A stretch of 64,000 nt of DNA from IMGVR_UViG_3300028800_000001:186001-250000; one strand, 5' to 3'; positions 2,964-26,005 are shown, counted from the stretch's first letter. Translations and numbers: made by a program. Notes: generated by a model not told the origin, from the letters alone.

Positions 2964-3089
2964 CAGTATAGCATATTCCCAGATTCCCGTGTTTTCTGCT
3001 ACACTGATTTCTAGCCACTCTTCGCTCAGTGAGCATTACCGTACAGTGGCCCTGGAAAGAAGAGCATCTCCTCTTCTTTCTTTTTTGAT

Positions 3090-3932
3090 CTAAGCACTCC
3101 TTTCGTCAGGGTACTCTAGCCTATATAACAAAAAGTCGAGGAGACTTCTGTCATTCTTTCTGCTATTGCAACGCTTGCAAGCCGCTGTTAGATTCGTCCA
3201 ATGCTCCGCGCCATTATTTGCTACAGGATCAATATGATCTATATGTTCCATCGGCTCTCCACAGTAACAGCAAGGATCTTTGTACAACGAAGTCAGATGA
3301 ATAAAAGTCTCTTCGTCGCGATACAGTTCTTTTGCTTTCTCAGTATTGCGATCAGAAATCTTTTTGAAACGACCTCTCAGGCTCGTCATTCTATCTCGAA
3401 CCTTTCGGTCTTCTCGTCTTCGATAGCTCCTAAATCTTTTATTAATTTGATCGCGATGAGCTTTGGCGTATGCCAAAGACAACTCTACCATCTTTTGAGG
3501 ATTCTTATGATATCGCCTCTTGCCGCTTTCTCTGTGGCATGTCAAGCATTCCTTCTTCCCCTTACGCAAATTCCCTTCAACAAGGGGATGACCATTAGGA
3601 CAAAATCCTTCATGATCGTTTTTTGGTGGGACTCCATTTTTTCTAGCTCGCTGCATCTCACGCTCTCTATGGCAAGTCAGGCACTCTCTTCTTCCTTTGC
3701 GTAAGTTCCCCTCTACTAAGGGATGTCCTTTGGGGCACATTTCTTTCTTCAAACTTGGAGGTCTGAGCGCTCTTTTCTTCTTCTTATACTCAGAGGATGC
3801 TTTATTATTGCAGATTCTACAAAGACGGTTTAAACCGTCTTTTGATGCTTCCCTTTTGTGAAAAAATTCTTCGGTTGCATCAAAATTGTTTTCGCAGCCA
3901 GGACAATACTTTTGTGGTACACTATTACCCAT
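3090..3932 (-). CDS. HNH homing endonuclease with tandem Zn-ribbon repeats
   Basis: two CPxGHPLVEGNLRKGxxECLTCHRE repeats; CCYCG...HIDHIDPV...NLTAACKRCN. Confidence 0.85.
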   Translation of the reverse strand: MGNSVPQKYCPGCENNFDATEEFFHKREASKDGLNRLCRICNNKASSEYKKKKRALRPPSLKKEMCPKGHPLVEGNLRKGRRECLTCHREREMQRARKNGVPPKNDHEGFCPNGHPLVEGNLRKGKKECLTCHRESGKRRYHKNPQKMVELSLAYAKAHRDQINKRFRSYRRREDRKVRDRMTSLRGRFKKISDRNTEKAKELYRDEETFIHLTSLYKDPCCYCGEPMEHIDHIDPVANNGAEHWTNLTAACKRCNSRKNDRSLLDFLLYRLEYPDERSA

Positions 3933-4043
3933 GGTAAGACTCCCATTCTTATCATCAGCCAGAGAGTGCTCTAACACTGCTCTGGCAACAAGCTTTACTA
4001 ACTAAGTATATAGTATTTGTGCAATAAGACAACACCTCGCTAT

Positions 4044-4853
4044 TTACTCGATAGTTCTAATTGTCCAAAAATCATCTGCAAGGTTTGAGTCGAGTAAGTA
4101 AGTATATGGAAGATACCCATAGCCTTTATCACCCCAATCAGTGCCCCACGAATTTCTGAAGATAAACATCTGCTTACCATTGTCATAGCCAACCGCAAGT
4201 ACTGCATGTCCACCAAGCGCCTGCTCATCTTGCGCTGGCATCGGCACCATGCCGGTCTGTGACACGTGTGGACTTTCAAAGCTCTGATAGACCGTAATTC
4301 CAGCAACGAACGGATAGCCTTCGGCAAGACATGCTTGCATTTTACTCAAGTGCTGCGTGATACGTTTGTATTTAAGTGCTAAATGTTTGAGTCCATCCTG
4401 GTAACAGGAATCGGGTGGCTTTTGCGCAAACTTCTCAATATCGTACGCCCACAGCGCTTCACTACAGACACCAATACCCGCAACCGATTTGATGCCATCT
4501 CTAATCATTGCGCCTGCATCAGAGTTCACCGTATGCTCTATAGCACGCTCGTTGTAATAAATGAAGAGGCGTGAAGGCATGGTGACCGAAAGTCCCTGCT
4601 TTGCCTGATCAAACTGGATTGCAGCGGCAATCGCATTCGCAGTACAGGAGCCCAACGACCCCTGATCATACGGAACGGGTAATTCAGCACGCAAGTCTAT
4701 CACCTGCGGAATAGTTTCAAGAACGGGAACATAGGCGTGATCACGCTGGTCAGGGGTGTCAGGAAGCCATCCATACCGGTAACCGGCTGGTTTTGCGACA
4801 ACTGTCATAGCTTTTTGCTGCTTTCGTTGATAAGCGTAACGGAAAAAGGGCAT
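4044..4853 (-). CDS. papain-like cysteine peptidase (C1A, xylellain-like)
   Basis: YGWLPD, QGSLGSCTANA (Cys), GGHAVLAVGY (His), RNSWGTDWG (Asn). Confidence 0.92.
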   Translation of the reverse strand: MPFFRYAYQRKQQKAMTVVAKPAGYRYGWLPDTPDQRDHAYVPVLETIPQVIDLRAELPVPYDQGSLGSCTANAIAAAIQFDQAKQGLSVTMPSRLFIYYNERAIEHTVNSDAGAMIRDGIKSVAGIGVCSEALWAYDIEKFAQKPPDSCYQDGLKHLALKYKRITQHLSKMQACLAEGYPFVAGITVYQSFESPHVSQTGMVPMPAQDEQALGGHAVLAVGYDNGKQMFIFRNSWGTDWGDKGYGYLPYTYLLDSNLADDFWTIRTIE

Positions 4854-4918: not shown

Positions 4919-5332
4919 TTATTTCTTTTTGCTGCCTTTTTTCTTGTTCTGATCATCCATCATCCCTGGAGTGCCAGCCTGCACAGGCGGAACGGGTGGT
5001 TTCTTTGGATTGCGCACTGGCAATGAGGGGAGCTGATTAGGATATGCCCCTGCTGGTGCCATCGGGATTTTCGAAGAGATATTATTGTCCTGCTTCCCAG
5101 GTTTCTTTGCCATAGGAGGCGGATTCTCCCCTTCAGCCGGAGTAAAAGGTCTGACCGCACCTGCAAACGGCTTCTTTGGAGTGGCTGGCTTTGCGGCTGC
5201 TGCTGGTTTGGCTGCGAAGGGATTGACTCCAGGGACACCACCCTTGCGTGCTTTCTCCATATCGCTGTTATCAATTCCCGCATTGCTCTCTTCGGGCACT
5301 GTTGCGTGACTATTTACTGGTTTCTTCGCCAT
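4919..5332 (-). CDS. low-complexity Pro/Lys/Ala-rich protein
   Basis: 137 aa, disordered composition, co-oriented in head operon. Confidence 0.6.
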   Translation of the reverse strand: MAKKPVNSHATVPEESNAGIDNSDMEKARKGGVPGVNPFAAKPAAAAKPATPKKPFAGAVRPFTPAEGENPPPMAKKPGKQDNNISSKIPMAPAGAYPNQLPSLPVRNPKKPPVPPVQAGTPGMMDDQNKKKGSKKK

Positions 5333-5846
5333 TATTTGTTTCTCTTTCTTTCTTTACAACGCGCATTACGTGATGCTGCGCAATAGGTGGCTTCACCATC
5401 GTTGGCTTTTTGGGAGCAGCGACTTTCTTCGGAGCAACGGTTCTCTTTGGAACCACCACTTTTTTCGGAGCAGCTACCCGCGCTGCGTGATGCGCTGCTA
5501 CTTTTTTCGGCTTCTTTGGCTTTTTCGGTTTTAGAACTTTTGGTTTGGGAAGCTTCTTCGGCTTTGGAGGTTTCGGTGCCTTTGCTACCGAAGAACCAAG
5601 ATGCGCATCACCAAGAAATGCCCCTGGCTTTGCTGGTGCTTGTGGCTTCACGACAGGCGCGGCAACCGGATTGGGTGTAGTAGTCACAGGATGACTCTGT
5701 ACCCCCACTATCGGCTTTGGTGGTGGCATCAATGGTTGTAAGTAATTCGTGGTACCACCAGCTTGAGAGCGCTGCGCTGGATGCATTGCATTCCAGGTAG
5801 CCCAACTCTTACGCGCTCCAGCACGCAGATACGCCTCAAATGTCAT
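5310..5846 (-). CDS. highly basic histone-H1-like low-complexity protein
   Basis: KPKK/APKK repeats, 178 aa. Confidence 0.6.
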   Translation of the reverse strand: MTFEAYLRAGARKSWATWNAMHPAQRSQAGGTTNYLQPLMPPPKPIVGVQSHPVTTTPNPVAAPVVKPQAPAKPGAFLGDAHLGSSVAKAPKPPKPKKLPKPKVLKPKKPKKPKKVAAHHAARVAAPKKVVVPKRTVAPKKVAAPKKPTMVKPPIAQHHVMRVVKKERETNNGEETSK

Positions 5847-5944
5847 GACTTCCCCTTTCGCTTTGGCCCTTTCAGATATTCCATACCACCAGCCATGCCG
5901 ATATCTTTCTTCAAGATGCTCATACGTATATGCGACTTCTTCAT
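5843..5944 (-). CDS. 33-aa basic peptide downstream of ART-like paralog
   Basis: MKKSHIRMSILKKDIGMAGGMEYLKGPKRKGKS; fills gap exactly, GAGG RBS, ATGA overlap with next gene. Confidence 0.45.
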   Translation of the reverse strand: MKKSHIRMSILKKDIGMAGGMEYLKGPKRKGKS

Positions 5945-5946: not shown

Positions 5947-6936
5947 TTACCTCTTTGTTGTCACGGTAGAAACGCGTATTGCTGTACGATTAAGCAGTAC
6001 AAAGTATCCAGCATCGTTATACACACCGCCCGTTCTCGTTCCACTTGCGCTCACATCATAGCCATCATAGCCCTGAGAAGCAGCATAGCGCCCTTCATCC
6101 TTATAGATTTCGAGCAACGCTTTTTTCTTATCGAGTTGCTCTCCCACTGCCAGCTTTTTTGCGGGATTACGTGTCCTGTTATAGCTCCGCTGAAGACTCT
6201 GCACTTCACTTTCTGTGGTAGTGGCAAGCGCTGTCGTTTCCCGTTTAATCTGACTATAGTCGCCAATATTGGCATCACTCTTGAGCGAAATATGCATCGC
6301 AGTATCACCATAGTCAAACGCCTCTTTAAGTCCTTTGAGCGGTAATTTCGGATCTACCGAATACGCCATATAGGTTCCGTTGCCATAAATACCATAACCT
6401 GCATAATTGGTTCCCGATTGAAACGCTTTGGTATAATCACCATTGCCAGTATCATTGACCGCTCTATAGAACTCACGCTCCCCACCACGTATTGCTGCCA
6501 TCAAATCATCTTCAGAAACCAGATCTGGCTTGCCGTCGAAGCCCTGATGCGCATAGAGACCAGCCAACACGTTATCACCAGAGACCTTGCGATACGGAAC
6601 AGTGCCATCGTTAGCAAGCATTGCTTTACCAATGTCTGATCCCAAGATCTCGTCTTCGCTGAGCTTTTTCCCTTTGACGGTCTCATGCGCAGGTGGAGCC
6701 GTCACCACGCTTGCTGGCGCGACAACTGGCTTTTTACCACGAATGCGTACTCCCACAATCTCGCCATTACTATCTCTAATTACATTGTGACCGGAGGCTC
6801 CTCCACCATGATGTACCAGTAGGCGTGCAGAGCCAGAGCCGCCAAAGCGATTACCATGCATACGCTGATCATGTCTTCCAGGCATATGCTTCACGGCCTG
6901 TTTAATGGCTTCAATATCACGCTCTAATAAATACAT
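5947..6936 (-). CDS. ART-fold-like effector paralog 1 with HxPGRHDQxxHG tag
   Basis: EFYRA, GYGIYGNGTY, GYDG, YFVLLNR; paralog of four neighbours. Confidence 0.6.
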   Translation of the reverse strand: MYLLERDIEAIKQAVKHMPGRHDQRMHGNRFGGSGSARLLVHHGGGASGHNVIRDSNGEIVGVRIRGKKPVVAPASVVTAPPAHETVKGKKLSEDEILGSDIGKAMLANDGTVPYRKVSGDNVLAGLYAHQGFDGKPDLVSEDDLMAAIRGGEREFYRAVNDTGNGDYTKAFQSGTNYAGYGIYGNGTYMAYSVDPKLPLKGLKEAFDYGDTAMHISLKSDANIGDYSQIKRETTALATTTESEVQSLQRSYNRTRNPAKKLAVGEQLDKKKALLEIYKDEGRYAASQGYDGYDVSASGTRTGGVYNDAGYFVLLNRTAIRVSTVTTKR

Positions 6937-7928
6937 TAGTACCCTCGCTTCTTAAAGAGCTTTGTAGAGACACGCACTGCGGTGCGATTGAGCAGCACAA
7001 AGTATCCAGCGCTCGGTGCCCCTGCGGTGGTACGCGTAGCACTGACATCGTAGCCATCATAGCCTTTACTGGTCGCGTATTTACCAACATCATAATAGAT
7101 GCTCATGAGTGCATTCTTTTGTGCCACTCGCGTTTTAAGATCGTTATATTTTGTATCACTTAAAGAAGGATCACTCATTTTTTGGTTGAGCGCTGTAATA
7201 TCATCTCGCGTGCTGTTTGCTAACTCTGTTGTTTCGTTGACAAGCGTATCGTAATTACCAATCTTCGCGTCCTTCTTTAAAGCAAGATGCATCGCAGAAT
7301 TACCGTAGCCATGCGCTTCCTCTAGTGCCGCAGCAGGATCGTTTTTATGTAGCGCGTAGGCCATATAAGTACCGTTCCCGTAGCCACCGTAGCCTGCGTA
7401 ATACTCTCCACTCTTAAACGCATCGGAAAACTGGGAGCCAGAGCCCTCATTGGTGCCACGATAGAACTCACGTTCCCCGCCTGCAATTGCCGCGTTCAAT
7501 TCGTCTTCAGAGACCACATCAGGCTTTCCATCAAAACCTTGATCACGATACATAGAGGCCAGGATCTCATCGCCATCATTATGCGCTGCTATTCCGCCTG
7601 TATCCACCATTTCCTGCATCGTTTTCGTATTAAGCAGTTCATCTTCCATCAGGTCACGGCCCTTGACTGTCTGATGCCCAGGTGGAACTGTCACAATGCT
7701 TGCGTCTGCTGGCTTTGGCTTTTTCCCAGGCCGAATACGTACGCCAGTGATTTCACCGTTTGCGTCCCTGATGACATTGTGTCCAGAAGCTCCACCGCCA
7801 TGATGCACTAAAGACCTACCGGCTCCTCCTCCACTGAAACGATTGCCATGTGTACGCTGATCATGACGCCCCACCATATGCTTTATCGATTGCGCAATAG
7901 CTTCAACATCGCGTTCCAATTGATACAT
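6936..7928 (-). CDS. ART-fold-like effector paralog 2
   Basis: HMVGRHDQRTHG tag; EFYRG, GYGGYGNGTY, GYDG, YFVLLNR. Confidence 0.6.
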   Translation of the reverse strand: MYQLERDVEAIAQSIKHMVGRHDQRTHGNRFSGGGAGRSLVHHGGGASGHNVIRDANGEITGVRIRPGKKPKPADASIVTVPPGHQTVKGRDLMEDELLNTKTMQEMVDTGGIAAHNDGDEILASMYRDQGFDGKPDVVSEDELNAAIAGGEREFYRGTNEGSGSQFSDAFKSGEYYAGYGGYGNGTYMAYALHKNDPAAALEEAHGYGNSAMHLALKKDAKIGNYDTLVNETTELANSTRDDITALNQKMSDPSLSDTKYNDLKTRVAQKNALMSIYYDVGKYATSKGYDGYDVSATRTTAGAPSAGYFVLLNRTAVRVSTKLFKKRGY

Positions 7929-8911
7929 TAGAGCCCCTTCTTTTTGAAGAGCTGCGTGGAAACGCGTGCCGCAGTACGATTAAGCAGTACAAAATAACCA
8001 GCATAGTTAAAGTCACCTGCCGTTGAGCGTGACGCACTCACATCAAAGCCATCGTACCCTTTAGTGACCGCATATTTCCCATAATCCTTATAAATATCAA
8101 GCAAATTTTGCTTTTCTTTGATCTTTGTATTAATGGCACCGTATTGCACCATTGACATACCTGGACCTACCTGTCCAGAAAGCCTTGCAATCTCTTTTTG
8201 CGTCTCGCGTGCCAGATCGTCGGCTTCATTCACAATTTTATTGTAATTCCCAATTTTGGCATCCTTCTTTACTGCAATATGCATGGCAGAGTCGCCATAT
8301 CCACGCGTCTCAGCAAGCGCGGCCCCTGCCAGATCAGAGTACGCCATATACGTCCCGTTTCCATAGCCGCCATACCCTGCGTAATATTCGCCGTCTTTAA
8401 AGGCATCAGAAAACTGCGTTCCAGAACCTTCCATCGTTCCGCGATAAAATTCGCGGTCTCCGTTCGCAACAGCGGCATTTAATTCATCCTCTGAGACGAC
8501 ATCTGGCTTGCCGTCAAACCCCTGATCATGATAGAGTGAAGCAAGCGTTTTATCGCCATCATTCTTAATTGTGACCCTGTCCAGGTTGACAAGCTCCTGC
8601 ATGGTATTACTCTTCAAGAGCTCATCTTCGCTCATCTCTTTGCCTTTGACGGTTTGATGCCCAACAGGAGGAGTTACTATACTTGCATCAGCAGGTTTTG
8701 GTTTCTTCCTAGCTCGTATGCGCACTCCTGTAATCTCGCCGTTGCTATCGCGGATCACATTGTGCCCAGGTGCGCCACCACCATGATGTACCAATGAACG
8801 AGCAGAGCCGCCACCACTAAAACGATTTCCGTGGGTGCGCTGATCGTGGCGACCGACCATATGTTTAAGTGCCTGTCGAATTTCCTCGACATCCTGCTCT
8901 AATTGGTACAT
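7928..8911 (-). CDS. ART-fold-like effector paralog 3
   Basis: start MYQLEQD at 8911 after AGGAG; same motifs. Confidence 0.6.
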   Translation of the reverse strand: MYQLEQDVEEIRQALKHMVGRHDQRTHGNRFSGGGSARSLVHHGGGAPGHNVIRDSNGEITGVRIRARKKPKPADASIVTPPVGHQTVKGKEMSEDELLKSNTMQELVNLDRVTIKNDGDKTLASLYHDQGFDGKPDVVSEDELNAAVANGDREFYRGTMEGSGTQFSDAFKDGEYYAGYGGYGNGTYMAYSDLAGAALAETRGYGDSAMHIAVKKDAKIGNYNKIVNEADDLARETQKEIARLSGQVGPGMSMVQYGAINTKIKEKQNLLDIYKDYGKYAVTKGYDGFDVSASRSTAGDFNYAGYFVLLNRTAARVSTQLFKKKGL

Positions 8912-8919: not shown

Positions 8920-9099
8920 CTACTTCTTGATTTCTGTCGCCGCTTGCTTGAGCAGTGTTTTCCACTTCGCGTCAAGTGCATCAAAGTCTTCTGCTTTTTC
9001 CACAGCCGCCACAAACGCGTGGCGATCTTCCACGCTGAGTGCCATAAAGGTTGGGGTGCTCATCGCACGCCCTGCTTGTTGTGATAACTTTGGATTCAT
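8920..9099 (-). CDS. 59-aa helical protein, candidate immunity (missing from ORF track)
   Basis: MNPKLSQQAGRAMSTPTFMALSVEDRHAFVAAVEKAEDFDALD...; ATGA overlap with upstream gene; paralog of 11289-11483. Confidence 0.7.
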   Translation of the reverse strand: MNPKLSQQAGRAMSTPTFMALSVEDRHAFVAAVEKAEDFDALDAKWKTLLKQAATEIKK

Positions 9100-10076
9100 G
9101 CTTTCATTCCTTTCGTATACGTTTTATCTGAGACACGGATAGCCGTTCTATTAAGTAGCACGAAGTATCCGGCAGTACTACCTGCTGAAGGACTCACGTC
9201 GTAGCCATCATACCCTTTGGACGTAGCGTAGCGTCCAACATCACCATAAATCTTTTGCAGTACCGTCTGCTCGTGTATCTTCTTAGCAAGCACCTGACTC
9301 TTCGCAAGATCACGTTCGCGACGAAACTGCGCTTCGAGGCTGATTTGCTCATTTTCTGCTTCATTGTATAGCTTATTCGCCTCGACCTCCAGCTTTCCGT
9401 AATCTCCAACCTTTGCATCTTTTTTGAGTGCGATTCGCATTGCATATCCACCATACGCATGCGCCTCGCGCAGCGCTCCAGAAACACCGTCACTTCCATT
9501 GGAGTACGCCATATACGTGCCATTCCCGTACATCCCATATCCAGCGTAGTAGTCTCCATTTTTAAAGGCATCGATGTAATCACCACTTGCGTTATCACGA
9601 AGACCACGAAAGAACTCGCGTTCGCCTCCTGCCACCGCCGCTTTGAGCGCATCATCAGAAATCACATCTGGTTTGCCATCAAAGCCCTGATCTTTATAAA
9701 GAAACGCCAACGTATCGTCTCCATCATTAATGAATGAAGAGTCATCGCTATGCGCAAGCATATCAGCGACCGTTCCTGATTTGAGCAACTCATCTTCGCT
9801 CATCTCTTTTCCCTTCACCGTCTGATGCCCAACGGGAACGGGTGCGATTGTTGCATCGGCAGGCTTGGGCTTTTTGCCACGGATACGCACGCCCACAATA
9901 TCACCATTCCCATCGCGGATGACGTTGTGGCCTGCGGCCCCGCCTCCATGATGTACGAGTGACCTTGCCGCTCCCGCACCACTAAAACGATTGCCATGCA
10001 TATGCTGGTCATGACGCCCTGGCATATGTTTAATTTGCTTCAGCAGCAATCGAATATCACGTTCTAAAAGAGACAA
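9096..10076 (-). CDS. ART-fold-like effector paralog 4
   Basis: TTG start after GAGGA; HMPGRHDQHMHG tag; EFFRG, GYGMYGNGTY, GYDG, YFVLLNR. Confidence 0.6.
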   Translation of the reverse strand: MSLLERDIRLLLKQIKHMPGRHDQHMHGNRFSGAGAARSLVHHGGGAAGHNVIRDGNGDIVGVRIRGKKPKPADATIAPVPVGHQTVKGKEMSEDELLKSGTVADMLAHSDDSSFINDGDDTLAFLYKDQGFDGKPDVISDDALKAAVAGGEREFFRGLRDNASGDYIDAFKNGDYYAGYGMYGNGTYMAYSNGSDGVSGALREAHAYGGYAMRIALKKDAKVGDYGKLEVEANKLYNEAENEQISLEAQFRRERDLAKSQVLAKKIHEQTVLQKIYGDVGRYATSKGYDGYDVSPSAGSTAGYFVLLNRTAIRVSDKTYTKGMKA

Positions 10077-10084
10077 GCACTTCC

Positions 10085-10324
10085 TCACTTGATATGGGTA
10101 ATCTTCATACTCTTTTCAATACTCTCCAACGTCTCTTTCCCACTATAGGGCTCCCACTCTCCATGCAAAAGCCAGAGATAGAGGAGATCAGCAGGCGAAA
10201 GCGTCTTCGCATCCAGATCAAGAAATGCGGCCATCGCCTCATCTTTATTGCTATTGGAATCATGATATGATCCTCCATCAACAAGGTAGCCATTGTCTGC
10301 ATTTTGATACAGAATTTTCGTCAT
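10085..10324 (-). CDS. 79-aa protein, candidate immunity of DUF3626-like gene
   Basis: immediately downstream of 10336-11292. Confidence 0.55.
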   Translation of the reverse strand: MTKILYQNADNGYLVDGGSYHDSNSNKDEAMAAFLDLDAKTLSPADLLYLWLLHGEWEPYSGKETLESIEKSMKITHIK

Positions 10325-10335
10325 CTCTTTTTCCT

Positions 10336-11292
10336 TTACCCTACACGCCAGGAAACGCCAGCGGCCTTGAGTTTTTTCTGAAGGGCAATCGTCGGTTTCT
10401 TGCCAGAAAACACCACTTCAGAAATATGCTGCGTGGTGACCCCGCCATGCGTTTGCGTCTCAATATAGCGAAATTGATCGTTACTCATACCGCTCTCAAT
10501 AGAACGTACCGAGAGCGGATCAACCGCACCGTAATGAAATGGATTTGGATTGGTTGAAATATTAAATATTTTACTATTCGCTTCAGTTAAGGGTTGCGGG
10601 ATCATCTTTGGCGAAGTCCCTCCACCAGTGCTACCCATACTATCCTCTGCGGTAATCGTCACCCGATCAGAAAGCGCGGCCTTATCCATCTTGATCGCAA
10701 TAGCTCCATACCCATCTAACCTCCAGCTCCCTCCACCATTGCTATCGTTGCTCATGTACCCATAGATAGGACGCTCATTTGCATCCATCGAAGCAGGATT
10801 GCCAAAAAGATTTTCTTCAGCTTGCTTACGTGTAGACAACGAGTACTTTGCTGAAGGGTTGGCTGGCACCTGAAAGGCATTCTTAAACGAGCCATCACTG
10901 AGAATAGAGTCGAGTGCCTTCGGACTGGTACGCATCCACATCTCTGCTTTCCCTACCAGATCTTGCGCTTTTTGATCTGCTGCTTTGACATAGTCGTCAT
11001 AACTCATACCATGTTTGCTCGCAAACGCACTCCAGGTGGACTTACGAGCCGACTCATATTGCTGTTGCCAGTGATCATCTGGATGTTTATTGGCAAGCGG
11101 CTTTGGCTTTTGATTGTCAGGATGATCTGGATGCTTGGGACCAAGCTCACGTCTGCCATCAGGATGCACAATTAAATGCGCCTCACCGGCTGTCGTAAAA
11201 CGGCCCGTGTGATCATGATAGCGATTGTATTTCTCCTCAACATCACGAACCAGATGCTTAATGTCAAGAAGTTCGAAACGCAGTAACGTCAT
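10336..11292 (-). CDS. DUF3626-like protein (probable ART fold) with YHDxxGRF tag
   Basis: ERPIYGY, YGAIAI, TxEDS, YIETQTHGG motifs; N-terminal KYNRYHDHTGRFTT. Confidence 0.6.
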   Translation of the reverse strand: MTLLRFELLDIKHLVRDVEEKYNRYHDHTGRFTTAGEAHLIVHPDGRRELGPKHPDHPDNQKPKPLANKHPDDHWQQQYESARKSTWSAFASKHGMSYDDYVKAADQKAQDLVGKAEMWMRTSPKALDSILSDGSFKNAFQVPANPSAKYSLSTRKQAEENLFGNPASMDANERPIYGYMSNDSNGGGSWRLDGYGAIAIKMDKAALSDRVTITAEDSMGSTGGGTSPKMIPQPLTEANSKIFNISTNPNPFHYGAVDPLSVRSIESGMSNDQFRYIETQTHGGVTTQHISEVVFSGKKPTIALQKKLKAAGVSWRVG

Positions 11293-11483
11293 ACTTTTGA
11301 GCTACCTTTAAGATATGTTTTTTCCGCATCCACAAGAACCTTTTTATTGACACTATCCAACGCGTCAAAATCTTTCGCTTGCTCTACTGCCTCCAAAAAG
11401 CTTTGACGCTGCTCACGTGACAGGTCTCTATACACATCCGTACTCATAGCGCGTCCAGCGCGCTGTGAAAGTGCTATATTCAT
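11289..11483 (-). CDS. 64-aa helical protein, candidate immunity
   Basis: MNIALSQRAGRAMSTDVYRDLSREQRQSFLEAVEQAKDFDALD; paralog of 8920-9099. Confidence 0.7.
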   Translation of the reverse strand: MNIALSQRAGRAMSTDVYRDLSREQRQSFLEAVEQAKDFDALDSVNKKVLVDAEKTYLKGSSKV

Positions 11484-11496
11484 ACCATTCCCTTTC

Positions 11497-12519
11497 TTAG
11501 TCAATCCAGGCACCACCAGAGAAGCCAGTGTATGAGGCTTTATGATGTACTTTGGTCGAGACACGCGTCGCAGTACGATTGAGCACTACATGATACGTAG
11601 ATTGTGGCGACGCTGCTCGATCCACTTTTATCACATCGTAGCCCTGGCTTGCGGCGTAACGCCCTGCATTGGAATAGACCTCACGCAGCAACTTCAAATC
11701 ACTTTCTCGACGCTGAAGCCCTGCGTAAGAAGGATCGCTACTTGGAACGGTATAGAGCTGATTGCGCACCTTATAGATCTCACTTGTCACACGTGCTTCG
11801 GCTTGCCCTGCTTCATTATTAAGATCACTATATTTACCAATCTTTGCGCCCTTTTTAATGGAGAGACGCATCACCGCACCCTGCCCATAATTGTTAGAAT
11901 AGCTGCCTGCCACCTCTTTTGCGCCATTGGGGTTGCCCTTTTTCGCTCCTGCAACGTAGGTACCATTGCCATAAATACCGTAGCCTGGATAATACTTCCC
12001 TTGCATATACGCCTGATCAAACCCTTGCCCATCAGAAACCCCACGATACGCTTCTAGCTCTTTCCCTGTGGTCACATATTTGTCCATCTCGGAAGGACTG
12101 ACCACATCAGGCTTCCCATCAAAACCGTGATGCGCAAATAATGCTCCGAGCAGCGCGTCTCCTCCAGCACTGCGTGTAGCAAACTGCTTTGGATTGGCCG
12201 CATACGCATCACCAAATTTCGCAAGAATATCATCATCACTCATGGGACTGCCTTGCGTAATTTTATTGGCTATCGCAGGACTTACCTTTGGAGGTTTGGG
12301 GGGTTTTACAGGCTTTGGAGGAGGCACATCAGGACCATGCGAAAGAGGATTGCCATGCGCGTCATATTGAAGCACTCCAGGCTTGCCGCCAATACGTATC
12401 TGGCGACGCGTCCCAGCGATCATGTGAAATCTATTACCATGCGTACGTTGATCATGACGACCAGGAAGATGCTTAATTTGTTCGCACAGTGCCTTGAGCT
12501 CTTGCTCTAGAAGAAACAT
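11497..12519 (-). CDS. ART-fold-like effector paralog 5 (most divergent)
   Basis: HLPGRHDQRTHG tag; EAYRG, GYGIYGNGTY, GYD, YHVVLNR. Confidence 0.6.
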   Translation of the reverse strand: MFLLEQELKALCEQIKHLPGRHDQRTHGNRFHMIAGTRRQIRIGGKPGVLQYDAHGNPLSHGPDVPPPKPVKPPKPPKVSPAIANKITQGSPMSDDDILAKFGDAYAANPKQFATRSAGGDALLGALFAHHGFDGKPDVVSPSEMDKYVTTGKELEAYRGVSDGQGFDQAYMQGKYYPGYGIYGNGTYVAGAKKGNPNGAKEVAGSYSNNYGQGAVMRLSIKKGAKIGKYSDLNNEAGQAEARVTSEIYKVRNQLYTVPSSDPSYAGLQRRESDLKLLREVYSNAGRYAASQGYDVIKVDRAASPQSTYHVVLNRTATRVSTKVHHKASYTGFSGGAWID

Positions 12520-12612
12520 AGCGCACTCCATATCTCAAAAGATAAAATAGATATTTGAGATATGGACATTTGAGGATGCACCTATCATAGCAGATCTGTG
12601 CAGAAAAAGAAA

Positions 12613-12735
12613 CTATTTTTTCTTGGGAAGTTTACTTTTCACATTCTTTACAACCGCGCCCCAGGAGCGCTTCGCTACCGGCTCGTCCCATATAATAGAA
12701 TCAGGATGCCACAAAAACTTTTTCGATTTCTTCAT
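12613..12735 (-). CDS. 40-aa peptide downstream of VIP2-like ART (missing from ORF track)
   Basis: MKKSKKFLWHPDSIIWDEPVAKRSWGAVVKNVKSKLPKKK; GGGAGG RBS; own promoter. Confidence 0.6.
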   Translation of the reverse strand: MKKSKKFLWHPDSIIWDEPVAKRSWGAVVKNVKSKLPKKK

Positions 12736-12752: not shown

Positions 12753-12805
12753 AGTATACCCTAATTCACACGTTACGTCAAATATTTCTTCTTTGCATTT
12801 TCAGA
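12753..12805 (-). promoter_or_regulatory. sigma70-type promoter with upstream box
   Basis: TTGACG-17-TATACT plus TCTGAAAA at conserved distance. Confidence 0.7.
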
Positions 12806-13489
12806 CTTGGCAAGTCCCAACGTCACTGTTCGAATGCCATATTGATTTTTACCTGTACCAAGCACTTTGAACTTTGACCCAGGCGGAATAAGAAATTCGT
12901 GTTCATCCTTTCCTTCGGAAATACTTTCCACATACAATCCTTTTGCGCCTTTGGGCACATGGATTACAAACTTCATTGTATCGCCAAAGGAGGATTCATC
13001 GTCGCTCGTGGTTGAAACAAAGGCTGGATCGGTAAAGCTTTTACCAACGTTGCGTTCGAGCTCTTGAAAGACCGACTTGGCCGTTGCTTCATCAGGAAGT
13101 TTAATGCCCCGTGACACCGAGAATGCGACAGGGGCTTCCCCTCTATTTAATCCCTCTGTCGCCGCTTTGATCATCTGAGCATATTTGGCAGGCAGCGCCG
13201 TCTTCTCACGCAGTGAGCGGTTAAACATATCGTAGAGACTACTGGTGTACTGCACGATAGCATTTTTTTGTTCGCGAGAAAGTCCCTTTGTCATCTTCTT
13301 ATAGAGACCGAGCAGATGCGTGTTGCGCTCTTCATCGCTTCCAGCAAGGCCACCGCTATCGCTTTCCTCTGCGCTTCCGTAATGTCCCGCAGATGCGGTT
13401 GCAAAACGACCATGATCATCATGATAGGGATCAGCCTTACTTGCTAAAAAGCGCGTAAGTTGTACCACGTCGCTCACGAAAGGAATCAT
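12773..13489 (-). CDS. ADP-ribosyltransferase, VIP2/C3-like (R-S-E class)
   Basis: YT...FNRSLR, VSRG, FVSTT, EHEFLIPPGSKF; N-terminal KADPYHDDHGRFAT tag. Confidence 0.85.
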   Translation of the reverse strand: MIPFVSDVVQLTRFLASKADPYHDDHGRFATASAGHYGSAEESDSGGLAGSDEERNTHLLGLYKKMTKGLSREQKNAIVQYTSSLYDMFNRSLREKTALPAKYAQMIKAATEGLNRGEAPVAFSVSRGIKLPDEATAKSVFQELERNVGKSFTDPAFVSTTSDDESSFGDTMKFVIHVPKGAKGLYVESISEGKDEHEFLIPPGSKFKVLGTGKNQYGIRTVTLGLAKSENAKKKYLT

Positions 13490-16368
13490 TTACGCACGCT
13501 CTCCTGAAATTCGCGATACTGTGTGCTCACCGAGACTGGTGGCCTGCGCTTTTTCTCTTCGCGTACTGCAAGCTCTTTCTCTGTGCGTTCCAAGAGCGCT
13601 TCCACGCGGTGAATAGCTTCCTTCTTCTCAGGGACAAAGACCTGAGAACAGCGGCAACGAATGATATTGCCAGCAGACGCCCCAATGGTCATATCCCCTG
13701 GATACATCAAATATTCGCCTCCCACCAGAAAGGGATCTTCATAGCGACGCAATTGTTGATCGGCCTGCGCATGTGCCAGTCTGGTATGTGCGTCATGCGT
13801 ACTAATCCAGACTTTTAAAAGTGGAATACCAACGGCTCCAGCCGTCTTATGTGCGCCATAGTTATAGGCAGTCGTCCACTCCGTTTGCGCAATCATTTCT
13901 GCTTTTTTGCCTAAGCGCTCACCAGAGAGGAAATTGCTCAAGCGTTCGCCAATAGCGCGGTTGTCTTCGCCTTGCGCAAGCCCTGTCTCAATTTCACGAG
14001 CAACCTCTTTTTTGAGGGTATCAAGCACCTGCGCGGTCGCCTGCTCACCATGCTTACGCCCATATTCAGCCGCAAGGCTTTGCCATGACGGCGGTGACCA
14101 TTTCTTTTTATAAGCAGCACTGGTAAGATTTTTATGCGTATCATTTACGCCCTGTGTTCCTGCTTGCTCTGAGCACAGCGAAAGACCATGCAGAATGACT
14201 TTCTTTGAGGTGTCCCAGACCGGCTCAAGATTATCAGTAATCGTATTCGGATCAGTGCCTACACGTGCAGTTGCAATCGCCTGCTGTGCGGTGACGTTTA
14301 ATGCGTGACGCACTGGCTCCACACCACGCGTACTCTCCAGGTTTTGCTGACTCTCTAGCACTGGTGTGCTCTTAATCTCTGTCACAATCACCCGACTCAT
14401 CGTCTCTTGCGCATCCGCGTCCTGCACATTTGACGTTCCTTGCTGTGTTGAGCCCTGTCCAGGTTTGGGTGTAGGAGAGGCCGAAGGATTTGGCCCAGGA
14501 CTAGGAGGTGCTGGCTGTTTTCCAGGCGGTAGTTGTGCAGGTTGTTGCCCAGGTGGTAACTGCCCACTACCATCGTCAGGCGGTGGTGGTCCTCCTGCTC
14601 CTGGTTGCGGTGGCCCTGCAAGCGTCTGCTTAAACATCGTCTCGACAAACTGGCCCATTGCCTCTTCAGGCACAAACGCTTTATTCATCGTCGTGATATT
14701 GAAGTAATCCCCACCATCAATTTCAGTGAGCCCAAGAAGATTGCGCACTTCGTTTAAGGTCACAACGCCTGCGCCCCACTGTGCCATGACGCGAGTATTG
14801 AGGCTATCACGGTCCTCTTGTAACGCCTCCACCTGATCTTTGTCATAGTCGAGCTCTAAGCGCTCATCAAACATTGGCACGAGCCAGACGTTGAGACGAT
14901 CCCTCAGTTTATCCATGAGGGGCAAAACCGTCTCCTGATAAAAGCTTTTACGTGCTTCCCCATAATTGGAGTTGTGGACACAGAGCCCTTGCGCAAAGAA
15001 GGTATGCGTCCCTTCTACTTCAATGTCATACACATCCACTTCAAGGAGCTCTTCAATCTTTTGCAGCTCCACCAGTGTCGTGCCAACCGGAATACTGGGA
15101 AATTCATCAGAATAGACGCATTCATGCCTGATTGTTTCTTTGAGCGGCCCATCACGAGCCACCAACAGATCGCCAACACGCAAGTCATCTAAGCGCACAA
15201 AATAGAGTCCATCAAAACGCTCTTTCTTCTGTTTATTTCTGCGCGCCATAAGAAAGGGGTGATTGGCCGTCGCCTCAACCGTAAACGATCCTGCCGTCAA
15301 ACGAAACGTCTTCTTCTTCCCTGTTTTCCACTGGCGTGTAATACGCCGCTTCACAATCGTATTGAAGGTCGGATCATAGGAGTAAACTTGAATACCAGGA
15401 GTGAGCATGCCGATAGGCAGTGGCCCATGCACCGTTTCAATGCGGCTCTCATAAGGGAGACAATAGGTTTTATTGGCATTGTCACCAAGCAGTTCAGACG
15501 GCACACCAAGAGCAATGGAGATATCACGCATATTTTGCTTGCGGCTCTCCTGCCAGTCCAATTCCATTGGCGACATAGAAAACTGTTTCCAGTCCAACCC
15601 ACCCTCTAGCAAGAGTGGTACACCTGCGTTCTTCTTGCCGGTATATTTCTCCCGAATCACTCTTCTCAAACGCTCAAATTGATCGTTGCCGAGTGTGCCA
15701 GAGGCAACAAGCGCACCAGAAGGTCTTCCTGCGTTCTGAAGTATAGCGGTGTTCCAGTCAAATCCTTCATTTTGCTGATCAATCAAGGCTGCGGCTACCG
15801 CGACGGGAGAAAGTCCGTACCAATCATTCGTTGCCGAGAACATCTTGAGATGCATAATATCTGGTGCATCATAGTATTGGCGATGACCATCAAGCGTATA
15901 TTCGTAGCCAGCGATAGTACCAATACCAGGAATGACACGCATACGGTCTGGTCGCATTGTCCAGAGCTCCATTGGCAGCGCACGCGGGTTAGGACGTACC
16001 GCGTACATATAGGCATTGCCCGAAAGTATCCAGTAGGAAATGATCTCTTCTAAAAAGGTGGCGGAACCATGACGGGGATTGGGTTGCATAAAAAGATCAA
16101 GGAGTGGGTGTTCTTCAATGACGCGTTTCTTATTGGTTTTCTGTGTCAGTTTCCAGGGGATGCCAGCACAACTTTGCGCGATCAAAGAGATAGCTTTATA
16201 CGTCGTAATATTTTTTTCATAGCCGAATGTTGCTAAATTCTTAAAATCGCGTGGCGTATAAATAGGTTGCCCAGGCGCAATGAATTGTGCGTACATCTGA
16301 TACGCTGGATCGTCCTTCTTTTCAGAACCACCCAGGCGCAAGAAGAACTTCTGGAGCGGATTTGCCAT
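13486..16368 (-). CDS. HK97-family portal protein with intein, fused to MuF (Mu gpF/SPP1 gp7) head morphogenesis domain
   Basis: GNAY, GLSPV, NAGxPLLLEGG, GVPSELLG, TLNEVR portal motifs; C-terminal KVWISTHDAHTRLAH...YPGD...CRC MuF motif. Confidence 0.9.
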   Translation of the reverse strand: MANPLQKFFLRLGGSEKKDDPAYQMYAQFIAPGQPIYTPRDFKNLATFGYEKNITTYKAISLIAQSCAGIPWKLTQKTNKKRVIEEHPLLDLFMQPNPRHGSATFLEEIISYWILSGNAYMYAVRPNPRALPMELWTMRPDRMRVIPGIGTIAGYEYTLDGHRQYYDAPDIMHLKMFSATNDWYGLSPVAVAAALIDQQNEGFDWNTAILQNAGRPSGALVASGTLGNDQFERLRRVIREKYTGKKNAGVPLLLEGGLDWKQFSMSPMELDWQESRKQNMRDISIALGVPSELLGDNANKTYCLPYESRIETVHGPLPIGMLTPGIQVYSYDPTFNTIVKRRITRQWKTGKKKTFRLTAGSFTVEATANHPFLMARRNKQKKERFDGLYFVRLDDLRVGDLLVARDGPLKETIRHECVYSDEFPSIPVGTTLVELQKIEELLEVDVYDIEVEGTHTFFAQGLCVHNSNYGEARKSFYQETVLPLMDKLRDRLNVWLVPMFDERLELDYDKDQVEALQEDRDSLNTRVMAQWGAGVVTLNEVRNLLGLTEIDGGDYFNITTMNKAFVPEEAMGQFVETMFKQTLAGPPQPGAGGPPPPDDGSGQLPPGQQPAQLPPGKQPAPPSPGPNPSASPTPKPGQGSTQQGTSNVQDADAQETMSRVIVTEIKSTPVLESQQNLESTRGVEPVRHALNVTAQQAIATARVGTDPNTITDNLEPVWDTSKKVILHGLSLCSEQAGTQGVNDTHKNLTSAAYKKKWSPPSWQSLAAEYGRKHGEQATAQVLDTLKKEVAREIETGLAQGEDNRAIGERLSNFLSGERLGKKAEMIAQTEWTTAYNYGAHKTAGAVGIPLLKVWISTHDAHTRLAHAQADQQLRRYEDPFLVGGEYLMYPGDMTIGASAGNIIRCRCSQVFVPEKKEAIHRVEALLERTEKELAVREEKKRRPPVSVSTQYREFQESVRK
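14971..15462 (-). mobile_element. mini-intein (164 aa, no endonuclease) in portal
   Basis: begins CLPYES, block B TANHPF, ends VYDIEV...CVHN followed by Ser. Confidence 0.9.
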
Positions 16369-16749: not shown

Positions 16750-18597
16750 TTACACATTCCCTACAATGAAATCATTCATAATTTGTGGCGTAGCGGTGTC
16801 AAAACCTACAACATCCAACGAGCCTGGATCGGCTGGATCGGCAATTGTGAATTCCGTCGCGGTCATTCCCATGACGATCAGCTTTGCATTGATACCGCTG
16901 TGCTGTCGATAATTGCGCAGCGCTTCCGAGGCGTGTATTTCACCGGCCCACGTCTCATTGTCGGTAAGCACAATAAAGGCATCCGCCTCAACATTGTTTT
17001 TCTGTGCCCAAATCATCGGCAATGAGCAATCAGTCCCACCAAACGGCATGCGATCAACAGCCGCAAGTGCATCGTCCAAACGCTGTTTTGGTGAAACAGG
17101 TAGTGGCACGAACTGATGACTAAACGCCATCATCGCATAATTGCTCTCCGTTGCAGCCGTGAGCAGCGCAAGCGCGGTGGAAGCCACTCGTGGAGTGAGC
17201 CCAATCACCTCTGCCAAGGTTCCACCGGTCATGGAACCTGAAACGTCTACCGCAAGCACCAAGCGCTTATTCGTTGGTGTGATGACCCCAAAGGAAAGAT
17301 GAAACGCGTCATGGAGCGCATCAACGATAGACTGCACAGGCGTCCAGGTAGCAGTGCTTCTCAAGCTGCGTCCGGCCTTGTAAGTGAGCATTGCGGCCAG
17401 GATTTTAATTGGGTGCAAGCGCGCTCCAACTAAGCGCTTCTGCTCATGCAAACGTTTGTTTACCAGCGCCGTTGCGCTGCTCGTTTGCGTCAGAATGCCC
17501 ACTCTGGTCATCGTCGCAAGGTTCTTCACCATCATTTCCGGCTGCGACTGCTCCAAGAGAATCTCCCAGACCGCTTTCGATTTGAGATATTGCGTTGGCA
17601 CTGCTTCACGTGGAAGTTTGTATGCCTCAATCAACTTCACGACTTCCGCTTCGCTATTGGCGCGCTTTGCCTGTTCGAAGGCACGCAAAATTGCGACCGG
17701 ATCATGATCAGAGGGAACCACTGACTCAATTTCCCCTTTCGCGATCCATTTGAGCGCTTCAGCACGCTCGCCAGAAGAATGTGGATGTGCTAAACGCACA
17801 ATATCTTGCTGACTCCAGCCATCGCGGCTCTGATACTTCACACTCTGGTACGCCAACTTCTCGACTGCCATGTCTTCGTACCACAAACGGCTGGATTTGC
17901 GCTGCGCACCACCACGGCCACGGAACTGCTCAATATAGGACTGAAAGTGCAGCCAATGTGTACCAATGCGCACCACTTTTCCAAGCTGGCTATACGCATA
18001 TTGGCGAACCTCAAGATCCTCTGGATGCAAAAGCTGAACGGTTTTCCCACTCTTCTTCACCTTGAGCTCAATCGTGTTTTCGTCCAGACGCGTCCAGGTA
18101 CGACTGCCATCTTTGGACGTAACGGTAAGCCCAACTTTCGGAAAACGTGTAAACTCTCTCTCGTGCTTCTCGTTTACGTGTTCGGTGTCATCCTCTGTGT
18201 AGCGATGCAACAGGTACACCATCTCAGCGGGAACCGTGTGCGCAACCGTTCCATGTACATCACAGGCGCAACAACGCGCAAGCGCAAACAGCGCAGGATC
18301 TTCTTTCGGAGCGCGCCCTGCCTGGGAAATCTCCACAATGGTGTCTACCACCTCTTTGCCACGACCAGCGCGTAGTAACGCCTCTAGTGTGTCCAGGTTG
18401 TCCTTCGTCAGCTTTTTCTTTCCAACATAATAGGTAGAGCTGCTACTGCCCAGGATCAAAAAACGCTTGAAGCGATCCAGATCGTCCAGCGTGTAACTAA
18501 ATCCACCCGCATTGTTTTTCTTCTGGTTGGAACCAGGGATCGGCTGGCTCTGTGGCGTCACCAAATTACGCGTGCCCACATTACGATAATTGCTCAT
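16750..18597 (-). CDS. rsr: Ro60 / TROVE-domain RNA-binding protein (Rsr)
   Basis: NNAGGF, RFLILG, KYQSRDGWS, NLATMTR, vWA MIDAS DVSGSM, GGTD, LTDNET, DVVGFD; GAGGAG RBS before ATG 18597. Confidence 0.95.
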   Translation of the reverse strand: MSNYRNVGTRNLVTPQSQPIPGSNQKKNNAGGFSYTLDDLDRFKRFLILGSSSSTYYVGKKKLTKDNLDTLEALLRAGRGKEVVDTIVEISQAGRAPKEDPALFALARCCACDVHGTVAHTVPAEMVYLLHRYTEDDTEHVNEKHEREFTRFPKVGLTVTSKDGSRTWTRLDENTIELKVKKSGKTVQLLHPEDLEVRQYAYSQLGKVVRIGTHWLHFQSYIEQFRGRGGAQRKSSRLWYEDMAVEKLAYQSVKYQSRDGWSQQDIVRLAHPHSSGERAEALKWIAKGEIESVVPSDHDPVAILRAFEQAKRANSEAEVVKLIEAYKLPREAVPTQYLKSKAVWEILLEQSQPEMMVKNLATMTRVGILTQTSSATALVNKRLHEQKRLVGARLHPIKILAAMLTYKAGRSLRSTATWTPVQSIVDALHDAFHLSFGVITPTNKRLVLAVDVSGSMTGGTLAEVIGLTPRVASTALALLTAATESNYAMMAFSHQFVPLPVSPKQRLDDALAAVDRMPFGGTDCSLPMIWAQKNNVEADAFIVLTDNETWAGEIHASEALRNYRQHSGINAKLIVMGMTATEFTIADPADPGSLDVVGFDTATPQIMNDFIVGNV

Positions 18598-18636
18598 AGT
18601 ACTCCTCTTTCTTTTTAGACGAACAATTTGCGACAT

Positions 18637-18668
18637 AAAAAAAAACACGGGACAACAAAGGCCCGTGT
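18637..18668 (-). terminator. terminator hairpin between Y-RNA array and rsr
   Basis: ACACGGG/CCCGUGU stem then U9. Confidence 0.75.
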
Positions 18669-20434: not shown

Positions 20435-20508
20435 TGCAGAAGACGAGATTCGAACTCGCATTCTCCTACTTGGAAGGCAGGCACGATTGCCATTTACGCT
20501 ACTTCTGC
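20435..20508 (-). tRNA. tRNA-Gly(TCC)
   Basis: cloverleaf, anticodon loop CT-TCC-AA. Confidence 0.85.
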
Positions 20509-20750
20509 GTGCGTTTTCTCTGAATACACTGGAAAACAAACCCCTTAAAGATTGTTACCAAGTTATTCTCTTTGTCCGTAATGCGAACGGTACTTTCCGG
20601 CTCCATTGACTTGACGAACCATGCGTAAACTTGCAGTGCTTCACGTACAGTTTCAGCACGCGTTGAAGCCTGCGTCATCTCTTTGAGTTCGTCAAGTCGC
20701 TCAATCTCTTCTTCGAAGAAGTCAAATTGCACCCGTATCTTTGGTTTCAT
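20499..20750 (-). CDS. ribbon-helix-helix (CopG-like) protein
   Basis: RVQFDF...TRAETVREAL; paralogs at 25196-25671. Confidence 0.65.
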   Translation of the reverse strand: MKPKIRVQFDFFEEEIERLDELKEMTQASTRAETVREALQVYAWFVKSMEPESTVRITDKENNLVTIFKGFVFQCIQRKRTQK

Positions 20751-21584: not shown

Positions 21585-21586
21585 CA

Positions 21587-21898: not shown

Positions 21899-22173
21899 TA
21901 TACTTGCCCCTCTTTCTCTTGGCGATACGCATCCATCCGACTAAAATCAGGACAAATTTGCGCACCCTTTGGAATATGTGGCATACCAGTCGTCACCTTG
22001 CCGTCTACAATCTCAACATGAACGCACGTCGCAGAAAGGATACGGCGTAAGCGCTCGTACTCCACCATGTTACCAGCGTCAAGCGCGGCCTGTATCTCTG
22101 TGAGCAACAATTGACCCGCTTCTGAAAAGTCCATAATTTTCTCTTTTCTTTCTCTTTAAAACAACATTTTTAA

Positions 22174-23719: not shown

Positions 23720-23735
23720 GATTTCTCCTTTTTAA

Positions 23736-25671: not shown

Positions 25672-25680
25672 ACCAGTCCC

Positions 25681-26003: not shown

Positions 26004-26005
26004 AA

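Follow-up and report, generated by a model that had tools for sequence, protein, structure and literature searches.

How does a phage keep the effector proteins that are packaged in its head harmless to the cell that makes them? No phage protein acts earlier in a newly infected cell than such effectors do, few of them have been characterized, and how they are loaded and restrained in the producing cell is largely unknown. The question is raised by the window, a stretch of 64,000 nucleotides (IMGVR_UViG_3300028800_000001:186001-250000) from a 327-kb viral contig of an uncultured phage, wherein a sequence-only reading had noticed tiny open reading frames (ORFs) next to presumed effector genes and had put them forward as candidate immunity or inhibitor proteins. 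Two of these ORFs, S1 and S2, define a family of small proteins (hereafter S) that is tied to an ADP-ribosyltransferase (ART)-like domain encoded immediately upstream. Judged by profile searches and gene order, S and this domain form a conserved two-gene module that has spread well beyond the window phage. By analogy with known systems, we propose that S is a binding inhibitor of the ART-like protein, in a split variant of the MuF toxin–immunity modules, and we give this reading a probability of about one-half.

A small protein family behind an ART-like domain

The two S genes and the five ART-like paralogs (A to E), which a profile scan finds to be the only members of their families in the window, are as follows, with sizes in amino acids (aa) and distances in nucleotides (nt).

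11289..11483, minus strand: S1, S-family member, 64 aa; its stop overlaps the start of the DUF3626-like gene by 4 nt
8920..9099, minus strand: S2, S-family member, 59 aa; its start overlaps the stop of paralog B by 4 nt
11497..12531, minus strand: paralog A, with a leader (helix plus KHLPGRHDQxxHGNRF), a disordered linker and an ART-like C-terminal domain; 344 aa (340 from the second ATG)
9096..10088, minus strand: paralog B, leader plus ART-like domain; 330 aa from the GTG, 326 aa in the calls of public assemblies
7928..8911, minus strand: paralog C, 327 aa from the ATG at 8911; no S gene after it
6936..7928, minus strand: paralog D, 330 aa; no S gene after it
5947..6936, minus strand: paralog E, 329 aa; a 33-aa ORF comes next

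As had been noticed from the sequence alone, the ~60-aa proteins encoded at 8920-9099 and 11289-11483 are paralogs (58% identity over 50 residues, E 4e-19), and each follows an ART-like paralog. S1 begins 13 nt past paralog A and lies inside a longer GTG ORF, wherein the ATG at 11483 is supported by the conserved N-terminus of the family. This family emerged solely from an exhaustive profile search. A word-indexed search with S2 alone matched only S2 itself, and tblastn of S2 against phages gave no match, whereas a profile of S1 and S2 recovered 85 clusters at E≤1e-3 from 1.84 billion representative proteins, about 75 of which are stand-alone proteins of 55-85 aa. Its members share a very conserved, basic N-terminal stretch (L-S-R-R-A-G-R) followed by two more conserved helices, and the family has no Pfam, PHROG or significant PDB sequence match. 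The helical character that had been suggested for these proteins is borne out by a confident AlphaFold2 (AF2) model of S2 (predicted local distance difference test score, pLDDT, 94.4), with helices at residues 3-12, 16-19, 23-35 and 44-58. The predicted fold is a three-helix bundle, for which Foldseek returns only generic three-helix bundles without significance (E≥1).

That S1 and S2 are genes can be judged from a diverged relative, L005, which shares ~75% nucleotide identity with the window phage where the two can be aligned. Synonymous sites are saturated between them (proportion of synonymous differences, pS, 0.6-0.9) and nonsynonymous change (pN) is far lower. The orthologs in L005 give pN 0.32 and pS 0.89 for S1, pN 0.24 and pS 0.67 for S2, and pN 0.18 and pS 0.74 for a 79-aa protein encoded after the DUF3626-like gene (78% identical and at the same position in L005). 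With pN well below pS and the place of each gene kept, all three are real protein-coding genes. The near-identical contigs L007-L012 differ from the window phage at 0-3 positions and so are uninformative on selection.

The pairing of S with the ART-like domain can be approached from either partner. Among contigs fetched through S, the upstream gene ends in an ART-like domain in all nine (four with stand-alone and five with fused S). An iterated S profile yields 24 matches with E<1e-5, every one of which starts 5-97 nt past an ART-like domain on the same strand, with none elsewhere. The stop codon of the ART-like gene and the start codon of S often overlap. Conversely, S lies directly downstream in 13 of the 22 lineages whose loci were fetched through the paralog domain alone. 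The neighborhood is thus conserved as the sequence-only reading would have it, and S1 and S2 track their effector family strongly and well beyond the window phage. In S-paired phages the ART-like domains are just 23-41% identical, and S is fused to the ART-like domain in 0 of the 85 clusters despite constant adjacency. Where S is instead fused to a following protein, the fusion gene too sits directly after an ART-like gene, so S is tied to its upstream domain yet portable on other head proteins. As a separate candidate, a partnership of S with its downstream gene was rejected, since that gene varies freely whereas the upstream ART-like domain is constant.

The module also reaches a bacterial genome. 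A locus in Streptosporangium longisporum (L054; NZ_BAAAWD010000016.1, 33031-39489) carries two tandem ART-like genes and then S fused to a longer ORF. It is one of four ART-like loci found in all by two scans of 185,579 species genomes with restrictive patterns, the first of which matched none.

Some lineages follow other arrangements. Where S is lacking, other small proteins can come after the ART-like gene (L033:2830-3042 and L035:6792-7511; L032:880-1167 and L034:6164-6535), and the small domain in L035 is fused to a leader-bearing protein, like the S fusions. On the high-GC phage contig L027 (2945-9931), at least six ART-like genes stand in tandem, each with an HPRD-type leader and with no S between them.

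The five large paralogs are 34-70% identical to one another. B, C, D and E form a closer set (56-70%). Since L005 has counterparts of A and B alone (A′ and B′), C, D and E are seen as recent additional copies. Paralog A matches the hidden Markov model of the ART-like family at 7e-62, and its ortholog in L005 is 63% identical (pN 0.25, pS 0.70). The window paralogs have no Pfam match and no significant PDB sequence match. The AF2 model of paralog B (pLDDT 70.7) consists of a helical leader, a disordered linker spanning residues 18-86 and a C-terminal mixed alpha/beta domain with a long helical hairpin insert. Foldseek relates this model weakly (E 0.2-1) to the ART folds of tankyrase, diphtheria toxin, PARP10/14/15 and exotoxin A. 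In the family alignment, an Arg (xxRG), the Tyr of GNGTY and the Asp of GYD are nearly invariant; the R of an LNR motif is invariant, and its L and N are nearly so. The catalytic triad of ARTs consists of H/R in strand 1, Y/S in strand 2 and E/D in strand 5 (PMC5512222). Profile–profile comparison by hhalign detects no similarity of the paralogs to the ART encoded elsewhere in the window, and similarity to the DUF3626-like protein is limited to the leader. The same ART-like domain is the C-terminal domain of MuF proteins in L016/L017, the classic position of a MuF toxin, and it also ends two polyvalent head proteins, gp030 of cyanophage PSS2 (MuF-containing, 1499 aa) and a 1170-aa protein of L049. 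The paralog domain is probably an ART fold, of doubtful catalytic status in the window copies.

A shared leader and a proposed inhibitor

The ART-like genes belong to a longer array, the remaining members of which that matter for the mechanism are given here.

13486..16368, minus strand: portal protein with an intein and a C-terminal MuF (head morphogenesis) fusion, 960 aa
12773..13489, minus strand: R-S-E type ART with an HDxxGRF leader, 238 aa
10336..11292, minus strand: DUF3626-like effector-like protein with an HDxxGRF leader, phrog_8314, 318 aa
10085..10324, minus strand: 79-aa acidic protein (isoelectric point, pI, 4.8); begins 11 nt past the DUF3626-like gene

From 16368 to 4044 all genes lie on the minus strand, with adjacent genes overlapping by 1-4 nt or sitting a few bases apart. 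The order is portal(intein)-MuF, ART, a 40-aa ORF, paralog A, S1, the DUF3626-like gene, the 79-aa ORF, paralog B and S2, followed by paralogs C, D and E, the 33-aa ORF, genes for two basic proteins and a papain-like peptidase gene. All of the named ORFs are intact, with no stop read-through needed. In L005 the order is portal-MuF, A′, S1′, DUF3626-like, an 80-aa ORF, B′, S2′ and a lysine/proline-rich (K/P-rich) gene, with further genes beyond.

What joins the large proteins is a short N-terminal motif. Scanned in all six frames with regular expressions, the window yields GRHDQxxH (in the five paralogs) or HDxxGRF (in the ART and the DUF3626-like protein) in exactly seven proteins, plus one unrelated chance match elsewhere. 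In all seven, the motif lies at residues 22-39 of the stop-to-stop frame with a helix ahead of it (coordinates 6856-6879, 7848-7871, 8831-8854, 9996-10019, 11197-11217, 12439-12462 and 13403-13423), and every one of the small ORFs is without it. Across phages, three types of leader (KHxPGxHDQxxHG; HPRD/HDxxGRF; GNxGHxGRxGxxGGS) occur at the N-termini of neighboring head-module ORFs, as seen in L006, L019, L027 and L049, with six copies in five ORFs in L019. The leader is also found between the domains of polyvalent proteins such as the 1170-aa protein, whereas L016, with its ART-like domain joined to MuF, lacks it. The same leader stands on three unrelated domains in the window, and fusions of S and leader to five further domain types occur elsewhere, a polymorphism like that of the MuF modules, in which unrelated C-terminal domains share one N-terminal module. 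We infer that the leader replaces the covalent MuF/portal link and marks head cargo for loading and ejection.

On this basis, the locus would be the cargo section of the head-morphogenesis operon of a jumbo phage, with seven effector-like proteins encoded downstream of the portal-MuF gene. The leader would send these proteins into the head and then, by ejection, into the host. S would be made alongside the ART-like protein, bind it one to one and hold it inactive in the producing cell; because S has no leader, it would not follow the effector into the head. S1 would be the partner of paralog A, and S2 that of paralog B and probably of its close copies C, D and E as well. For the DUF3626-like protein, this part would probably fall to the acidic 79-aa protein. 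There is precedent for such inhibitors, as IapK (for Apk2) and Bsi (for Bxa) are adjacent, non-enzymatic immunity proteins that block a MuF toxin by binding, and Apk2 and Bxa are neutralized by enzymes too (PMC12226406; PMC11699363). Among the modifying domains that occur in head-packaged polyvalent proteins, ARTs are the most frequent (PMC5512222; PMC9503650).

Several observations weigh against an inhibitor role for S. S is absent from 9 of the 22 ART-like lineages and from the L027 array of six, and it follows only two of the five window paralogs, with C, D and E adjoining each other directly. Pairwise identities barely resolve S1 with A and S2 with B as co-duplicated pairs, and do not clearly separate a cognate specificity of S1 from that of S2. 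The evidence for an ART fold is itself made up of weak matches: the top 17 PDB structures returned by Foldseek for the paralog model are nearly all ART folds, but with E values of 0.19-1.2; among 27 diverse ART-like members, Pfam ART-PolyVal touches three (best E 0.014) and PARP one (3e-4); and the family profile reaches the diphtheria toxin C domain in PDB at E 0.14. By our reading of the alignment, the position before the LNR strand is variable, being acidic (D/E) in many relatives and not in the window copies, which therefore may not be active toxins. As a family, S shows conservation and not hypervariability. The phage is large (jumbo) and probably virulent, whereas MuF toxins have been described in temperate phages. 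Lastly, at least five lineages have S as the N-terminal part of a downstream protein, with partners that include a LigT/2H phosphoesterase, an XkdF protease, a PARP-type ART, a DRAT-type ART and a RelA/SpoT-like domain, and in several of these fusions the leader is placed between S and the effector. An "immunity" protein in such a fusion would be carried along with other cargo, and the fusions agree no less well with docking or an adaptor function than with inhibition.

These fusions bring forward an alternative wherein S is an assembly adaptor or chaperone. With MuF or the leader anchoring the ART-like domain at the portal, S would bind this domain and either help to fold or load it or recruit the proteins fused to S. 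That unrelated proteins, including a prohead-type XkdF protease and leader-bearing effectors, carry S as their N-terminal domain speaks for this reading, as does the fact that all S-fusion genes still come directly after an ART-like gene and that the other small domain in L035 is likewise fused to a leader-bearing protein. The conservation of S, the doubtful catalytic status of the window ART-like copies and the resemblance of the S model to generic protein-binding three-helix bundles (without significance) point the same way. However, the ~75 stand-alone S clusters of 55-85 aa have nothing to recruit, and genes for immunity proteins are known to be arranged in this same order. Moreover, a 4-nt stop/start overlap makes fusion easy, and the fusions may be neutral or an artifact of assembly or gene calling. 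We consider an adaptor possible, though it is the inhibitor that we favor.

Taken one step further, S and the ART-like domain could be a docking pair for head loading rather than a toxin and its antidote, an idea that we hold only tentatively and judge to be unlikely. The dock would be the ART-like domain, with MuF or a leader anchoring it at the portal, and S would be the handle that brings itself or a fused protease, ART, 2H phosphoesterase or RelA-like enzyme into the prohead. The three leader types would then amount to a general loading code in tailed phages, with a logic comparable to that of the cargo-loading peptides of encapsulins. If S is such a loading handle, the module would represent a modular cargo-loading system in tailed phages.

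S might also travel into the host as a co-packaged subunit or cofactor of the ART-like enzyme, whether as an activator, a specificity subunit or a small ejected protein. That the two genes strictly adjoin and are translationally coupled suggests an equal stoichiometry of their products. Where S is fused to leader-bearing cargo, it would be taken into the head, and the N-terminus of S is very conserved and basic. A co-packaged S is nevertheless quite improbable, given that S is without the leader that all seven presumed cargo proteins have, that paralogs C, D and E and nine lineages have no adjacent S, and that no precedent was found in the literature consulted. A binding inhibitor that stays behind in the producing cell is the reading carried forward below.

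Relation to known head-packaged effectors

The closest relatives of the proposed system are the MuF toxin–immunity modules (Jamet et al. 2017), such as Apk2-IapK/Aph1 and Bxa-Bsi/BAH. These likewise lie in the head-morphogenesis module directly after the portal gene, and the window locus occupies this same portal-adjacent site. They encode variable effector domains, with ART and RelA-like domains being common, followed by a small ORF on the same strand, and some of their immunity proteins act by binding. Their gene order is the same as that in the window (PMC5576092, PMC11699363, PMC12226406), and relatives of the window ART-like domain (L016/L017, PSS2 gp030) are true C-terminal MuF domains. 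The window differs in that its MuF domain is part of the portal protein and each effector has an ORF of its own with a shared short leader, such that the covalent toxin–MuF fusion is not found. In addition, seven effectors stand in a row in a 327-kb, probably virulent phage rather than a prophage, the ART-like domain and S fall outside the described families, and S is sometimes fused to the next protein. By this comparison, the window locus is a split variant of the MuF module and not a member in the strict sense.

Polyvalent proteins of phages and conjugative elements (Iyer et al. 2017) share with the window a repertoire of ART, RelA/SpoT, 2H phosphoesterase and peptidase domains, a portal/MuF context and presumed packaging and injection with the DNA, and two of them, the L049 protein (1170 aa) and PSS2 gp030 (1499 aa), end in the same ART-like domain. 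Whereas several domains are joined in those two proteins, the window domains are split into single-domain ORFs, and in the window lineage a dedicated small partner follows one type of domain. The term "immunity protein" has 0 occurrences in the main text of the polyvalent-protein paper (PMC5512222).

A further parallel is T4 Alt, an ART that is packaged in the head and injected, for which we know of no small partner proteins. Several internal proteins of T4 have in common a short N-terminal signal, the capsid targeting sequence. The leader motifs of the window are unrelated in sequence to anything named by the searches, and a cleavage of the window leader is only hypothetical. Giant phages such as SPN3US and the phiKZ-like phages have tandem families of paralogous head-internal or ejection proteins. 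Two further papers bear on this subject (PMC5694885, PMC10052503).

Lastly, the 238-aa window ART matches by sequence the Tre1 chain of PDB entries 6dre and 6drh. Tre1-Tri1 is a type VI secretion ART toxin with an adjacent immunity gene. The two cases differ in that Tre1 is delivered by a secretion system and not by a phage head, and in that Tri1 is larger than, and unrelated to, either the 40-aa ORF or S.

Several consequences follow for phage biology. The pairing of an undescribed ART-like domain with an undescribed ~60-aa three-helix partner constitutes a new and widespread two-gene module with 85 sequence clusters of the small protein. The window presents a natural split form of MuF and polyvalent toxins, with seven effectors and one short leader, wherein the loading signal is visible as a discrete motif, and it offers candidate partner proteins for two further types of effector. 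If S is an inhibitor, it would be a compact scaffold that binds ART domains, and toxin–immunity logic would extend from prophages to jumbo phages.

The other effectors, small ORFs and neighboring genes

In addition to the S genes, the sequence-only reading had paired further small ORFs with effectors. Of the seven effector genes, all but those of paralogs C and D (hence also the ART, A, the DUF3626-like gene, B and E) have a small ORF directly after them. The claim that small ORFs track the effector family thus holds for S1 and S2, fails for paralogs C, D and E, which have no S, and does not extend to the 33-aa ORF, which is not a partner.

The 318-aa protein that precedes the 79-aa ORF falls below the Pfam gathering threshold for DUF3626 (PF12294; E 0.0056, 16.2 bits versus 27), and the named family that it matches best is phrog_8314 (3.4e-11), to which no function is assigned. 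It has no sequence relative in PDB, and its ortholog in L005 is 79% identical. The 79-aa protein has no Pfam or PHROG family match, and in a search of 5.8e9 proteins it found itself and the L005 ortholog only. As had been suggested, this ORF is present after the DUF3626-like gene, and it is conserved with that neighbor in one diverged relative (L005). It is likely the counterpart of the DUF3626-like protein, as a candidate partner or inhibitor, with the pair being known from this lineage alone.

The window ART, the start of which overlaps the portal-MuF stop by 4 nt, is firmly assigned by Pfam (ADPrib_exo_Tox 3.3e-21, 76 bits versus a cut-off of 23.4; ART 2.5e-10) and matches Lmo0066, SpvB, Tre1 (6dre_B; also 6drh), C3larvin, VIP2 and Certhrax in PDB by sequence. 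By our reading of the 238-aa translation, the R, S-T-x and E-x-E elements occur in order, as in the R-S-E type. The ART is absent from L005, and single-protein locus searches with it and with the DUF3626-like protein returned only the same phage plus leader-only matches.

The features that follow complete the array.

12753..12781, minus strand: sigma-70-like promoter TTGACG-17-TATACT, 10 of 12 consensus matches; overlaps the last ART codons and stop
12613..12735, minus strand: 40-aa ORF, basic (pI 10.4), in the leader of the paralog A transcript
5843..5944, minus strand: 33-aa ORF; begins 2 nt past paralog E and overlaps the start of the K/P-rich gene by 4 nt
5310..5846, minus strand: K/P-rich protein, very basic (pI 11.0), 178 aa; conserved in L005; no family match
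4919..5332, minus strand: basic protein (pI 10.1), 137 aa; 72% identical in L005; no family match
4044..4853, minus strand: papain-like cysteine peptidase, 269 aa; Pfam Peptidase_C1 1e-13; phrog_16701

The 40-aa ORF is indeed present 37 nt downstream of the VIP2-like ART, at 12613-12735, with GGGAGG 5 nt ahead of its ATG. It has no Pfam or PHROG match and no tblastn match among phages. L005 lacks ~105 nt of the ORF body and has no ortholog, and the coding status of the ORF is unconfirmed. It had also been credited with its own sigma-70 promoter. A promoter-like site does overlap the end of the ART gene, but L005 has a perfect site (TTGACA-17-TATAAT) at the homologous position without the ART and without the 40-aa ORF. 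Because L005 keeps the promoter without these ORFs, the site, as judged from this sequence comparison, most likely drives the downstream effector array and is not the peptide's own. Over the whole region, promoter-like sites are not enriched (23 observed versus 17.5 ± 4.8 expected), and neither are terminator-like sites. A second promoter-like element, the extended -10 sequence TGnTATGAT, lies at 12584..12592 (minus strand) between the 40-aa ORF and paralog A, and occurs also in L005 at about 3022-3036.

The 33-aa peptide lies after the last paralog, as had been noticed, and a pairing with that paralog was rejected. Neither Pfam nor PHROG gave it a credible match. Its conservation is limited to the last 17 codons (5843-5896), and this core follows the next gene: in L005 it stands after S2′ and before a 180-aa K/P-rich gene. 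Four of the six nucleotide changes in the core relative to L005 are synonymous by our count (pN 0.32 and pS 0.71 over 33 codons). From this pattern, the 33-aa ORF is best described as an upstream micro-ORF coupled to the K/P-rich gene.

These two ORFs bear most directly on the argument that the tiny ORFs are not genes at all and instead are chance reading frames or leader features. The 40-aa ORF, with no homolog, absent in L005 and situated in a 5′ leader between a conserved promoter and paralog A, would fit this description, as would the unconserved first 16 codons of the 33-aa ORF. Even here, the 40-aa ORF has a strong GGGAGG ribosome-binding site with the right spacing, and the last 17 codons of the 33-aa ORF vary mostly at synonymous sites. 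For S1, S2 and the 79-aa ORF, the argument is refuted by homology, purifying selection and synteny, and as an account of the tiny ORFs as a set it is very unlikely.

The 178-aa and 137-aa proteins are low-complexity sequences rich in lysine, proline and alanine, the genes of which overlap by 23 nt, and may be scaffold-like or DNA-associated internal proteins. The papain-like peptidase gene closes the effector block, in a position that is kept in L005 and L007, and its product could be a candidate protease for processing leader-bearing proteins.

Upstream of the array, the portal gene has Pfam matches to Phage_portal (6.5e-71), Intein_splicing (7.6e-11) and Phage_Mu_F (1.7e-07) as well as PHROG matches to portal and head morphogenesis families, with the intein spanning approximately residues 303-466 (Pfam Intein_splicing plus a Hint match). 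The L005 ortholog (956 aa, 75% identical) has the same intein and MuF architecture. Megablast of the region against 50,697 phage records gave no nucleotide-level match.

Other observations concern the surroundings of this block. Adjoining the portal gene upstream is a gene (16750-18648, minus strand) for a 632-aa Ro60/TROVE protein with a vWA domain (vWA_Ro60 1.4e-64, TROVE 4.1e-29); an Rfam search of the window at gathering thresholds found no Y-RNA-like partner for it and matched transfer RNAs (tRNAs) alone. Eleven tRNA genes (Gly, Lys, Pro x3, Val, Trp, Gln, Phe, Glu and His) lie at 20435-29344 on the minus strand. Genes for HNH or endonuclease VII-like homing-type endonucleases occur around the head module at 3090-3977, 1605-2438 and 37848-38786, all on the minus strand. 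Two paralogous phrog_2598 proteins are encoded on the plus strand (56903-58447 and 61606-63285), and both the GC skew and the gene orientation flip at ~54-56 kb of the window.

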